Below, in pieces: positions 474 to 43,150 of a stretch of DNA of 64,000 nt; within the stretch, counting starts at the first letter, position 1; each line of letters opens with the position of its first letter. The position numbers and the translations under genes were made by a program. Under the pieces are notes generated by a model. The model did not search any database, had not been told where the DNA came from, and worked only from the letters and a program-made list of their open reading frames with translations. The stretch spans positions 321,586 through 385,585 of the forward strand of contig RQSC01000026.1 of the NCBI GenBank assembly GCA_013416795.1. Reading direction: 5' to 3'. The stretch is from Prasinococcaceae sp. CCMP 1430 (Eukaryota > Plantae > Prasinodermophyta).

Positions 474-745
474 NNNNNNNNNNNNNNNNNNNNNNNNNNN
501 NNNNNNNNNNNNNNNNNNNNNNNNNNNNNNNNNNNNNNNNNNNNNNNNNNNNNNNNNNNNNNNNNNNNNNNNNCGTCCCACACCTCGTACTCCGTGCCAC
601 TCATGAGCTTCCGAGGGCGGTACACGCGCGTCTTTTTCCCTGCTTTCCCCTACAGTACGTGACCTCGCCCCTCCCCCCCGCGGAGAGTTAGGGGTAGGGT
701 TTATTAAAATCGCGGTGCGAGTGCATTTTGACGTGACGGGTCTGG

Positions 746-1454
746 ATGGACGTACGCCGGTCGTCGGGCGACGCTCTATCCACTGGAAAATCAAAATCAA
801 AACGCGGTGCTGGCGCTTCCTTTGGGGGGGGGGGGGGCATCGCCGTGCGCCGCCCCATCGGCGCGGCCGTCGGCGCGCTGCCGCTCGCCGCGCACGTGCT
901 CGCGCCGGGCGCTCTGTCGTACGGCATGCTTTCAGTCCTCCTAGGCGCGGGCTACGGCGTGTATCGCACGGGGCAGCTGGGTCTCTGAGGCTGCGTGCTC
1001 AGGGGCAGGTACGTATGCAGCGCGAGCAGCTTGCCCGGCCATTTCTCGCACCGAGACGCGTGCGCGGCGCTGACGGCAGCAATCGCAGGTGGAACATAGG
1101 CGGCCGGGGCGTCGAGGTCCCGAAGAAGTACAAAGACTTTGTTGCGAGCAAGCGTGGCCAGTTCGTGCGGCAACTGCTGGCGGTGGGCCCCGCGGTCGCG
1201 TTCGCAGTGACTTGCATGCTCGCCCACATGAGAGGCGAGCTCACCTACGACGTGGCGATGCAGGTCCTCGTTGTGCAGCTGGTCATGGTGCGATCGCGGC
1301 GCGGCCGCGCCCTTGCGCGCGCTCACGCGCTCGCGCCGGCGCTCTCGTGGCGCGCGTGCGCGCGACGTGGCTGCTGACGAAACGCCGCGGCGCGCGCGTC
1401 CATGTGGCCGTCGATCAGGTCGTGCTCGCGGTCGTCATCTCATATAATAGCTGA
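746..1454 (+). CDS. Candidate small membrane selenoprotein; exons 746-1008, 1089-1287, 1419-1454; in-frame TGA at 986-988
   Basis: Intron 1009-1088 (GTACGT..CTGAC..CAG) and intron 1288-1418 (GTGCGA..CTGAC..CAG) join one frame: ..YRTGQLGL-U-GCVLRGR|WNIGGRGVEVPKKYKDF..VQLVM|VVLAVVISYNS*. Several hydrophobic helices. Start codon uncertain (746 or 927). Confidence 0.65.
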
Positions 1455-1489
1455 GCCGCAGCGAGCGATGCCAGCGACGCGCCATGCCG

Positions 1490-1575
1490 CCGCAGCGAGC
1501 ACATGACGGCACCGGGCCGCAGCGGGCAAACACTCATGCCCGAGGACGGCAGCCAGACAACGCGCGCGCTCCCGC
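1490..1575 (+). promoter_or_regulatory. SECIS-like stem-loop in 3' UTR
   Basis: ATGAC (1503-1507) faces AGAC (1555-1558) as a GA quartet; GGC/GCC, CCG/CGG, CC/GG and CGGGC/GCCCG pairings; lower helix AGCGAGC/GCGCGCT; apical AAA is further from the core than canonical. Confidence 0.45.
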
Positions 1576-1863
1576 GCAGCGCACGTCCACCGACGGCGGG
1601 GGCGCGCGCGGCTCGCAGCAGGCGCGCCACCGCGCACTATAATCTGCTGGTTTCGCGTCGACGCTCCGGGCGCCGGCTGCCCACGGCCGCTTCCGTGCGG
1701 TGGACATTTCGAGGGTGTGTACAGTACAATCAAGTAGTACTAGACAGAGTTATGAGCACCACAGCGTGAATGTTGGGTGTGGGCATGGGCGTGCGCGGGG
1801 TGTGCGCGAGGCTCCGCCCAGCCGTGCCTCGCGCGAGCTGCAAAACTGGATGGGAGCACGCGC

Positions 1864-3263
1864 TTAGATGACGGTGCCGTCGGGGATCGTCGAGCCCTTG
1901 ATGATGGTGATGATGCCCGACTTGATCCAGTAGCCCGCCGCCTCGTTCTCCGCCTCCTGCACGTTCTCCTTGTTGATGATCTGGACGTTCTTGCCGATGC
2001 GCGCGTTCTTGTCGATGATGCAGTTCTGCACCACGGAGCCCTCGCCGATGCCGATGGGCACGTCGCCCTCCGCGAGCAGCTTGGCGGCCTCGGCCTCCGT
2101 CTCGTAGTAGTCGGCGCCCATGAGCAGGCAATCCTTGACGGTCACGTTCTCGTTGATGACCGAGCGCAGCCCCACGACCGAGTGCTCGACGTTGGCGCCC
2201 TCCTTGATGAGGCAGCCGTCGCCGATCACGCTCTGCGAGACGGCCGAGTTCATGATCTTCGAGGGCGGCAGGTAGCGGCTCTGCGTGTAGATGGGCGCCG
2301 AGCGGTCGAAGAACGAGAACTTCGGGTCGGGGTCGGTGAGCGCCAGGTTGGAGTCGTAGAACGCCTTGATGGTGCCGATGTCCTCCCAGTAGCCGTCGAA
2401 GAGGTAGGCCTGCACCTTCATGCCCAGGTCCTTGGCGCCCGGGATGACCTCGCTGCCGAAGTCCATGGCCGTGGGGAAGTGCTCCTTGAGCAGGCTGAGC
2501 AGCGCGTCGCGCTTGAAGACGTAGATGCCCATGGAGGCGATGTACGGGAACTCCTTCGCGCGCTCCGCGTCGAGGCCCAGGACGGTGGTGTCCACCGCCA
2601 TCGCCTTGAGGGCGTCGCCCTTGGGCTTCTCCGCGAAGTCGATGATGCGGCCGGTGTCGTCGATCTTCATGAGGCCGAAGGCCTCGGCGCGCTCCTCGTC
2701 CATGGGGAGCGCCGACACGGTGATGTCCGCGCTGGCCTCGCGGTGCGCGGCGACGAAGGCGCCGTAGTCCATGCGGTAGAGGTGGTCGCCCGCGAGGATG
2801 AGGTACTCCTCGCACTTGGCCTCCTCGAAGAGCCAGATGTACTGGCGCACGGCGTCGGCGGTGCCCTGGAACCAGTCGGGGTTGGTGGGGCTCTGCTGCG
2901 CGGCGAGCACCTCGACGAAGCCGTCCTGGAAGGAGCCGCCGCGGTTGTACGCGCGCGACAGGTGGCGGTTGAGCGACGCCGAGTTGTACTGCGTGAGGCA
3001 GTACACGCGGCGCACCTCCGAGTTGATGCAGTTCGACACCGGGATGTCGATGAGGCGGTAGTTGGCGCCGAGCGGCACGGCGGGCTTCGCGCGCTTCTTG
3101 GTGAGCGGGTAGAGGCGCGAGCCCGCGCCGCCGCCCAGGATGATGCCCAGCACCGACGAGTTGGCCGGCGGCGCGAGGCACACGGGCGCGGCCTCCGTCT
3201 CGGTCGCGAGCGCGTTCACCTTGCCGGCCTTGCCCGCCTGCGCGCGCGGCGCGGCGCGCACCG
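1864..3263 (-). CDS. APS1: ADP-glucose pyrophosphorylase small subunit (plastid); 5' end cut by single-N join at 3264
   Basis: [73 protein letters not shown]-terminal IPDGTVI; very high GC3. Confidence 0.97.
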
Positions 3264-3264
3264 N

Positions 3265-4500
3265 AATAGCCACGGGAGACTCATCCCGAGGCGTGTGGTT
3301 TGATGAACGCGCGCGCGCGCGGTCTCACACCGGCCGCAGGTTGGCGCCCGGCATGCGCTCCGATGGCATCACCATGCAGGTTGGCGCTCGACATTCGCTC
3401 TGATGGCAATAATAGCCACGGGAGACTCATCCCGAGGCGTGTGGTTTGATGAACGCGCGCGCGCGCGGTCTCACACCGGCCGCAGGTTGGCGCCCGGCAT
3501 GCGCTCCGATGGCATCACCATGCAGGTTGGCGCTCGACATTCGCTCTGATGGCAATAATAGCCACGGGAGACTCATCCCGAGGCGTGTGGTTTGATGAAC
3601 GCGCGCGCGCGCGGTCTCACACCGGCCGCAGGTTGGCGCCCGGCATGCGCTCCGATGGCATCACCATGCAGGTTGGCGCTCGACATTCGCTCTGATGGCA
3701 ATAATAGCCACGGGAGACTCATCCCGAGGCGTGTGGTTTGATGAACGCGCGCGCGCGCGGTCTCACACCGGCCGCAGGTTGGCGCCCGGCATGCGCTCCG
3801 ATGGCATCACCATGCAGGTTGGCGCTCGACATTCGCTCTGATGGCAATAATAGCCACGGGAGACTCATCCCGAGGCGTGTGGTTTGATGAACGCGCGCGC
3901 GCGCGGTCTCACACCGGCCGCAGGTTGGCGCCCGGCATGCGCTCCGATGGCATCACCATGCAGGTTGGCGCTCGACATTCGCTCTGATGGCAATAATAGC
4001 CACGGGAGACTCATCCCGAGGCGTGTGGTTTGATGAACGCGCGCGCGCGCGGTCTCACACCGGCCGCAGGTTGGCGCCCGGCATGCGCTCCGATGGCATC
4101 ACCATGCAGGTTGGCGCTCGACATTCGCTCTGATGGCAATAATAGCCACGGGAGACTCATCCCGAGGCGTGTGGTTTGATGAACGCGCGCGCGCGCGGTC
4201 TCACACCGGCCGCAGGTTGGCGCCCGGCATGCGCTCCGATGGCATCACCATGCAGGTTGGCGCTCGACATTCGCTCTGATGGCAATAATAGCCACGGGAG
4301 ACTCATCCCGAGGCGTGTGGTTTGATGAACGCGCGCGCGCCCGGCGCGTCCGCGCGGACTCACACCGGCCGCAGGTTGGCGCCCCGCATTATTCGCTCCG
4401 AGGGCATCACCATGCAGGTTGGCGCTCGACATTCGCTCTGATGGCAATAATAACCACGGGAGACTCATCCCGTGGTTTGATGAACGCGCCCGCGCCCGGC
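3265..4500. repeat. Tandem array of a 146-bp unit: 7 identical copies (3265-4286) plus a diverged copy and a partial copy
   Basis: AATAGCCACGGGAGACTC recurs at 3265, 3411, 3557, 3703, 3849, 3995, 4141, 4287. Confidence 0.97.
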
Positions 4501-41571: not shown

Positions 41572-43150
41572 TCAGGCGATGGGCCACGGGGGGGCGCATG
41601 GTCGCTGCAGCTCGGCGAAAGGGTCCTCGTCGTCGTCATCGGCGTCGACCTCGAACTCCCCCCGCGCGCGCTTGCGCAGCGGATGGTTGGCGGTAATCAC
41701 CGCGCGCGAGTGGCACGCCAGCAGGCGGCATGCCACGTGCAAGGTCGCCCAGCGGCGGCGGCACGCCACGCGGCCGCGGACAGCGCGCTCGACGGCCGGC
41801 GGGCCCTGGCATTGCCACAGCCCGCCCGGACCGCGCCTGCTCGAGATGGCCGCTGCGATCACCTTGGCACTGCTAGCGTTGATGCCGCCACCCGTGCCGA
41901 GCGTGAGCGACCGCAGCGTGCATGCGTCGCTCGCGAGGACCTCCGCGAGGCGCCTGGCGCCCGAGTCGCTGATGCGGTTGTTGCTGATCTTGAGCTCCCG
42001 CAGCGGGCACTCCGCGCCCCGGCGCAGCGCCTCGATGAGCGGGCGGGCGCCCTCGGCGCCGAGGCGGTTGCTGCAAACGTCCAGCGAGCGCAGTGCGCAC
42101 GCCCCGCCGGCGAGTGCATCGCCGAGCGCCTCGGCACCCTCCACGCCGATGGCGTTGTTCGCGAGGCTCAGCGAGCGCAGCGCGGACCTCCCGTCGCGCA
42201 GGGCCGCCGCGAGCGCCTCGGCGCCCGCCTCCTCTACGCCGTTGGCGAACAGGTTGAGCTCGTCCAGCACGCACCCGGGGGCGCCCAGCGCGCGCGAGAG
42301 CGCGCGCGCGCCGCTGCACCCCACGCGGTTGAAGGCCAGGTCGAGCGCCCGCAGGCCGCACTCGCCGCTGCCCAGGGCCCCCGCGAGCGCGCGCGCTCCG
42401 CGCGGCCCAACGTCGTTGTCCTCGAGGATTAGCCCCTCCAGCGAGCAGCGGGCGCTCGCGAGCGCCTCGGCCAGCGCGCACGCGCCGCCGTCGCCGATGC
42501 CGTTCTTGGACACCGTGAGGAAGCGCAGCTTGCACGCGCCGCTGCCCAGCGCGCCGGCGAGGGCGAGCGTGCCCTCCTCGCCCAGTCCGTTGTTGGCGAG
42601 CTTGAGGTAGCGCAGCGAGCACCCGTCGCTGCGCAGCGCCCCGGCGAGGACGCGCGCGCCGGTCGGGGTCAGATTGTTGTAGCCGAACACGAACGACTCG
42701 AGCTTGCACTCCCCGCTGCCGAGCGTCGCCGCGAGCGCGTGGACGCCGCCCTCGCTGATGTTGTTCTGGTAGAGGTTGAGCGACCGCAGCGCGCAGCCCT
42801 GGCAGCGCAGCGCGTCGGCGAGCACGCACGCCCCGTCCTCGCCCAGCGCGTTGGCGAACAGGCTCAGCGAGCGCAGCTTGCACTCGCTGCTGCGCAGCGC
42901 CTCGCCGACCGCGCGCGCGCCGACGGCGTCGATGTCGTTGCTGCGCAGCGCGAGCACGCGCAGCGCGCTCACGTCGGTGCGCAGCGCGTCGGCCAGCGCC
43001 AGCACCCCGTCGGCGGCCGTCGGCACCCCGAGCTCCTGCCGCAGGTGCCCGCCGTCCAGGTTGAGGCTCGACTTGGCCTTGACGAGCTGCGCCGCCCTGT
43101 CGCGCGCCTTGTGCCTCGCGGCCGCGGCGAGCTCTGGGCTGACCACTCGC
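41572..43150 (-). CDS. RI-like leucine-rich repeat protein (about 13 repeats of 29-30 aa); start codon not found
   Basis: Repeated LRSLxLxxNxIGxxGAxALAxAL. Confidence 0.85.

Follow-up and report, generated by a model that had tools for sequence, protein, structure and literature searches.

A probable selenocysteine-encoding UGA in a small membrane protein gene of Prasinococcaceae sp. CCMP 1430

The window analysed here, a stretch of 64,000 nucleotides of GC-rich nuclear DNA from Prasinococcaceae sp. CCMP 1430, very probably carries a selenoprotein gene, in which the UGA at 986-988 would be recoded to selenocysteine (Sec) under the direction of a hairpin in the 3' UTR (1503-1558) and the last UGA of the frame would act as terminator. 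This is the reading that an earlier note on the same DNA had put forward from the letters alone, and it is now supported by assemblies that contain the TGA, by homology that continues past the UGA in seven lineages and by the splicing of both introns. It is derived from comparison of DNA and RNA sequences throughout.

The mRNA is predicted to have at least three coding exons, with the first ~25 codons outside the window, and to encode a protein of ~158 residues. The predicted layout is a basic N-terminus, two hydrophobic segments, Sec-Gly-Cys where the membrane ends, ~40 residues of basic linker and two further hydrophobic segments. In hydropathy analysis Ala/Gly-rich hydrophobic segments flank Sec, and both the N-terminus and the linker after Sec have a net positive charge. 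Besides Sec insertion itself, we infer a membrane topology in which, by the positive-inside rule, Sec-Gly-Cys would lie at the cytosolic face right after the second segment, and a redox role in which the Sec/Cys(+2) pair would cycle between the selenol/thiol and the selenenylsulfide form. Placed at a membrane boundary, Sec-Gly-Cys offers a testable candidate for a redox function at the membrane surface in picoalgae of the oligotrophic ocean. With this gene the eukaryotic selenoproteome would gain a gene family, one that would escape profile-based surveys, since these are confined to families already known.

Transcript structure and the published gene model

The features of the gene and its surroundings are:

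746-840, forward strand: ORF start proposed in the earlier note, before the break at the poly-G run 825-837; excluded from the gene
841-1008, forward strand: remainder of the first coding exon, in frame from 842, encoding hydrophobic segments followed by the putative Sec and Gly-Cys-Val-Leu; aligned with the N-parts of the homologues
919-920, forward strand: GT donor of the published model PRCOL_00002755, which skips the TGA; absent from the joints of the RNA contigs
986-988, forward strand: in-frame TGA, probably read as Sec; present in RNA and DNA assemblies, with a homologous TGA in lineages L001, L007/L015, L009, L011 and L013
1009-1088, forward strand: intron 1, 80 nt, GT..AG; joint in three RNA runs
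1089-1287, forward strand: exon 2, basic linker and hydrophobic segments; from RNA contigs and homologues
1288-1418, forward strand: intron 2, 131 nt, GT..AG; joint in three RNA runs
1419-1454, forward strand: end of the coding sequence, closed by the terminating TGA 1452-1454; from RNA contigs and homologues
1455-1650, forward strand: 3' UTR as far as reached by RNA contigs, which end at 1556, 1619 and 1650
1503-1558, forward strand: SECIS-like hairpin with AUGA, an interrupted lower helix, a GCAG internal loop, a 5-bp upper stem and GA

The frame opened at 746 reaches the TGA at 986-988, goes on with Gly-Cys-Val-Leu-Arg-Gly as far as GTACGT at 1009. Behind the AG at 1088 it continues unchanged as an exon of 66 codons and, after 1288-1418, with 11 codons and the TGA at 1452-1454. 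Contigs from four assemblies were placed on the window: X1 and X6 (culture transcriptomes of the same organism), X2 (a marine metatranscriptome) and X16 (DNA). The only joints found in all three RNA sets are 1008^1089 and 1287^1419, exactly those of the two introns that the earlier note had drawn from consensus signals. In the first coding exon, the aligned RNA contigs start at 841 (X1, X2) or at 922 (X6) and run unbroken to 1008; the mRNA therefore retains the TGA. In the DNA, one contig spans 841-3075, and no run lists a difference at 986-988; the in-frame TGA described previously, with the peptide quoted on both sides of it, is present in the sequence and is read as TGA in RNA and DNA assemblies alike. 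The strain sampled in the metatranscriptome differs from the window at 934 and 961, both silent third codon positions, at 1127, which changes Lys to Arg, and at 1578 in the UTR.

Exon 2 is 100% identical to part of an annotated protein, EukProt PRCOL_00002755-RA (128 residues) from the marine green picoalga Prasinoderma coloniale, to which the gene is assigned here. This model joins ...GALS directly to WNIGG and must therefore splice from the GT at 919 to the acceptor at 1088, by which 90 bases including the TGA are removed. If the model were correct, donor 919 would be the productive one, the protein would have 128 residues and no UGA, and the contigs would represent an unproductive isoform. 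GTACGG at 919 is a plausible donor that preserves the frame, and a minor or rare isoform made with it may exist, because the RNA evidence consists of assembled contigs, which drop rare variants. We nevertheless consider it extremely unlikely that the model describes the productive mRNA: its joint occurs in no run, and it deletes the block that is conserved best in the family and that is contiguous in intronless homologues. The annotation has thus hidden a probable selenoprotein gene, as the earlier note had expected of standard annotation, through its choice of a donor with which the UGA is spliced out.

The 5' end has to be drawn differently from the earlier note, which had opened the gene at 746. 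DNA contigs end at 837 and resume at 841, flanking the poly-G run 825-837. An RNA contig of the metatranscriptome has 72 letters upstream of 841 that match nowhere on 574-3400, and the last 30 of these encode Gln-Gly-Arg-Ile-Thr-Ser-Arg-Ala-Glu-Ala of the annotated N-terminus, a motif kept in the homologues; the annotated N-terminus itself is nowhere to be found in the 64,000 nucleotides. Given the break of the assembly at the poly-G run and an RNA that encodes the conserved N-terminus upstream of 841, 746-840 is outside the gene, and the real first ~25 codons are absent from the window.

Some observations concern the surroundings of the gene. A run of 100 N occupies 474-573, ~250 bases before the poly-G run (825-840), and the piece 574-840 is probably misjoined to the downstream DNA, or else sequence is missing between them. 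At 574-628 there are RNA contigs of the minus strand from two culture runs, which continue past 628 with unrelated letters and look like the exon end of another gene beside the N gap. On the other side, an intronless ADP-glucose pyrophosphorylase gene with NTP_transferase and GlgC beta-helix domains lies at 1864-3273 on the minus strand, and RNA contigs cover 1779-3257. The 5' end of this gene is unreliable, with an N at 3264 and breaks of the DNA contigs at 3240-3265, and the metatranscriptome strain has an insertion of 20 bases behind 3243.

Conservation on both sides of the UGA

When exon 2 was used as query in a HMMER search of 1.84 billion representatives, it matched, apart from a spurious repeat protein, the entries of the alga itself and two short ORFs of marine metagenomes. 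Starting from those metagenome contigs, further lineages were reached using alignments of both protein halves, which gave six additional lineages in all, each from marine metagenomes (L001, L007/L015, L009, L011, L013). In all six the upstream ORF ends with TGA at the aligned codon, and after this TGA there follow immediately Gly-Cys-Val-Leu and then Arg-Trp, the frame staying open for 85-100 codons up to a TAG, TAA or TGA. With the window included, TGA is found at the Sec codon in seven of seven lineages and a sense codon in none. The family has a further member in MMETSP, P0014, and the counts given here are of the lineages with a contig. The region around the TGA is intronless in five lineages, which keep the frame across it; L001 has two presumed introns, sited differently from those of the window, and to judge from its GT..AG signals and the alignment it also keeps the frame.

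In comparisons among three related lineages, the 50 codons preceding the TGA have a dN/dS of 0.03-0.22 and the 85 codons following it one of 0.16-0.25, compared with 1.5-3.0 when the downstream part is read in either of the two remaining frames. These values indicate purifying selection on both sides of the TGA.

The conservation bears directly on the possibility that the UGA is a true stop, in which case a peptide of ~73 residues would be made and the downstream part would be either an ORF translated independently or a 3' UTR that is spliced. Gene callers did close the upstream ORF at the UGA in every data set. A true stop is most unlikely all the same, since purifying selection maintains the downstream part in the frame of the upstream one, the frames match in seven of seven lineages, and two introns downstream of a stop would be unusual. 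Moreover, conservation sets in with the codon that follows the TGA, no start codon being present there, and because the first Met is ~45 codons away, a separately initiated downstream ORF fails to explain it.

Homologues with Cys in place of Sec, which would mark the position as a redox site, were not found; a full-length Cys form was detectable only by the protein matching of exon 2, which led to PRCOL_00002755, and by the HMMER search; the word-based searches with the two halves left out proteins of more than 120 and more than 149 residues, respectively. Pfam gave nothing for all pieces of the family, and among the look-alikes of the C-part in the ESM Atlas the best score was 0.76, which is uninformative.

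The hairpin in the 3' UTR

A hairpin with an (A/G)UGA...GA core is present in the 3' UTR of all seven lineages, 24-133 nt past the stop, and varies between them by compensatory changes. In its general form it consists of (A/G)UGA-C, a lower helix of 10-11 bp that has a bulge or two, then an internal loop, an upper stem of 5 bp and a returning N-GA-N. The internal loop opens with AA, 11-14 nt after the core, in six of the seven; the window copy has GCAG where the others have the unpaired AA, and its lower helix has three interruptions. The ATGA at 1503, 48 nt past the terminal TGA at 1452-1454, is where the earlier note had placed it.

Using the raw MAFFT alignment with the structure taken from L001, 84.8% of the cells were paired, compared with 75.2% (sd 2.3) in shuffled alignments, and the covariation score was 0.327 compared with 0.149; none of 500 shuffled alignments reached either value. 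Pairing dropped to 40-51% when the partners were slid by 1-3 columns. The lower helix of L011 is almost entirely compensated. Folding was less informative: single sequences gave the SECIS shape for L001 only, and RNAalifold with three unaligned hairpins gave a different, unsupported fold.

A covariance model built from the seven hairpins had no other credible match in the 64-kb window; the one at 42440-42515 on the minus strand (12.7 bits, E 0.7) is most likely due to chance. In at least eight loci, the model matches the 3' UTR SECIS of the Ostreococcus-type hypothetical-protein-3 gene, and in one of these (L030) the match coincides with the Rfam SECIS_1 site. Outside that UTR, matches of 21-24 bits were seen at L059:3610-3679 (plus strand), L023:7439-7513 (minus strand) and L060:5667-5741 (plus strand), which may be SECIS of other selenoprotein genes on Mamiellales-like contigs. 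Rfam SECIS_1, by contrast, matched none of the hairpins of the family, also when stretches of 120 nt were searched, and it found no SECIS in the window at the gathering threshold, nor when small stretches were searched with E values of up to 10. The same Rfam model scores a known Ostreococcus-type SECIS with 26 bits, below the threshold of 35. Because the Rfam SECIS model misses them, the hairpins of this family are useful training cases for the detection of SECIS in GC-rich algae.

These data also allow one to weigh near-cognate readthrough, by which Trp, Cys or Arg would be inserted at UGA 986-988 and the hairpin would have another purpose. The lack of recognition by the Rfam SECIS model and the lack of the AA motif in the window hairpin would agree with it. 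It is very unlikely, however, in view of the fact that a sense codon never replaces the TGA in seven lineages, that the (A/G)UGA...GA core is followed by AA 11-14 nt downstream in six of them and that the hairpin model cross-detects the SECIS of a recognised selenoprotein family. In addition, the host alga uses Sec according to Li et al. (2020; PMC7455551), who report a high number of Sec proteins for P. coloniale. The genes of the Sec machinery lie outside this window.

Sec insertion at the first UGA is thus the favoured reading, and the positions of the two UGA codons relative to the hairpin are consistent with it. Reporter work has indicated that recoding of a UGA takes a distance to the SECIS of at least about 50-110 nt. 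Both UGA codons fit this spacing rule, the first, ~300 nt of mRNA upstream of the hairpin, as the one that would be recoded and the last, 48 nt upstream, as the one that would terminate. The proposal in the earlier note that the last UGA acts as stop because it is too close to the SECIS agrees with the data; the homologues end with TAG, TAA or TGA at 24-133 nt before the hairpin.

Comparison with known selenoprotein families

Judged from sequence, the family appears to fit no named selenoprotein family among those compared. The earlier note had left the choice between a membrane selenoprotein of the MSP type and a new family; the former has to be given up because of the motif around Sec, and the latter fits, with a possible distant tie to hypothetical protein 3.

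MSP, known from Chlamydomonas, Volvox, Ostreococcus and Dictyostelium, has Val-Gly-Ser-Sec-Cys-Trp-Pro inside the first hydrophobic segment of a protein of 170-230 residues (Lobanov et al., 2007; PMC2375036). It resembles the window family as an algal membrane selenoprotein in which Sec lies next to a Cys near a hydrophobic segment and of which hardly any form but that with Sec is known. MSP was rejected since in the published alignment (Lobanov et al., 2007) both the motif around Sec and the layout differ: the window family has Gly-Leu-Sec-Gly-Cys-Val-Leu after the second segment, and Gly-Ser-Sec-Cys-Trp-Pro is absent from it. The library-wide HMMER search with exon 2 also returned only members of the family itself and the spurious repeat protein. 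SelK and SelS are likewise small and membrane-anchored, with a single N-terminal anchor and Sec two or three residues from the C-terminus, a layout not seen in the window protein.

The closest known protein appears to be the uncharacterised hypothetical protein 3 selenoprotein of Ostreococcus, to which the similarity is weak. Possibly this is the protein named 'Hypo' by Jiang et al. 2020. The two families agree in overall layout. Both have hydrophobic segments on either side of one Sec, Gly-Leu immediately ahead of it, a Trp-(Asp/Asn)-(Val/Ile)-x-Gly motif at +8, clustered basic residues in front of the first hydrophobic segment and a SECIS or SECIS-like hairpin shortly after the stop, and some members of hypothetical protein 3 have two C-terminal segments, as in the window family. 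For example, in the relatives at L025:672-908 and L028:121-363 (minus strand) the C-part is longer and contains a second hydrophobic segment. Hypothetical protein 3, which was described as a small uncharacterised Ostreococcus selenoprotein and printed in the supplement of Lobanov et al. (2007; PMC2375036), differs in having an invariant NIAQAGVWDV after Sec without a nearby Cys, where the window family has Gly-Cys-Val-Leu, and in ~100 extra N-terminal residues. Pfam gave nothing for all pieces of hypothetical protein 3.

For the comparison of profiles, 51 hypothetical-protein-3 loci were fetched by a degenerate DNA pattern. The window exons were used separately in the searches, and for hhalign the intronless metagenome loci were read across the TGA with X at that position. 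The unconstrained profile alignment placed Sec on Sec, with a probability of 2-9%. The N-part scored 19.5, compared with a mean of 9.8 (sd 2.0) for column-shuffled controls, none of 150 of which reached it (P 0.004), column shuffling being a lenient control for hydrophobic segments. With the same lenient control, one of 150 reached the score of the joined form (19.9, P 0.02), and the C-part (8 of 150) was indistinguishable from the shuffled profiles.

A distant relationship to hypothetical protein 3 is possible, with chances that we put at about even. That the family is instead a separate Sec-only one, derived neither from hypothetical protein 3 nor from any described family, is a tentative reading with slightly less than even chances. 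It would then be a family of four-segment proteins with a Sec-Gly-Cys redox pair at the membrane surface, shared by Prasinoderma with several further marine picoeukaryotes of high GC content and absent from the published surveys of algal selenoproteomes.
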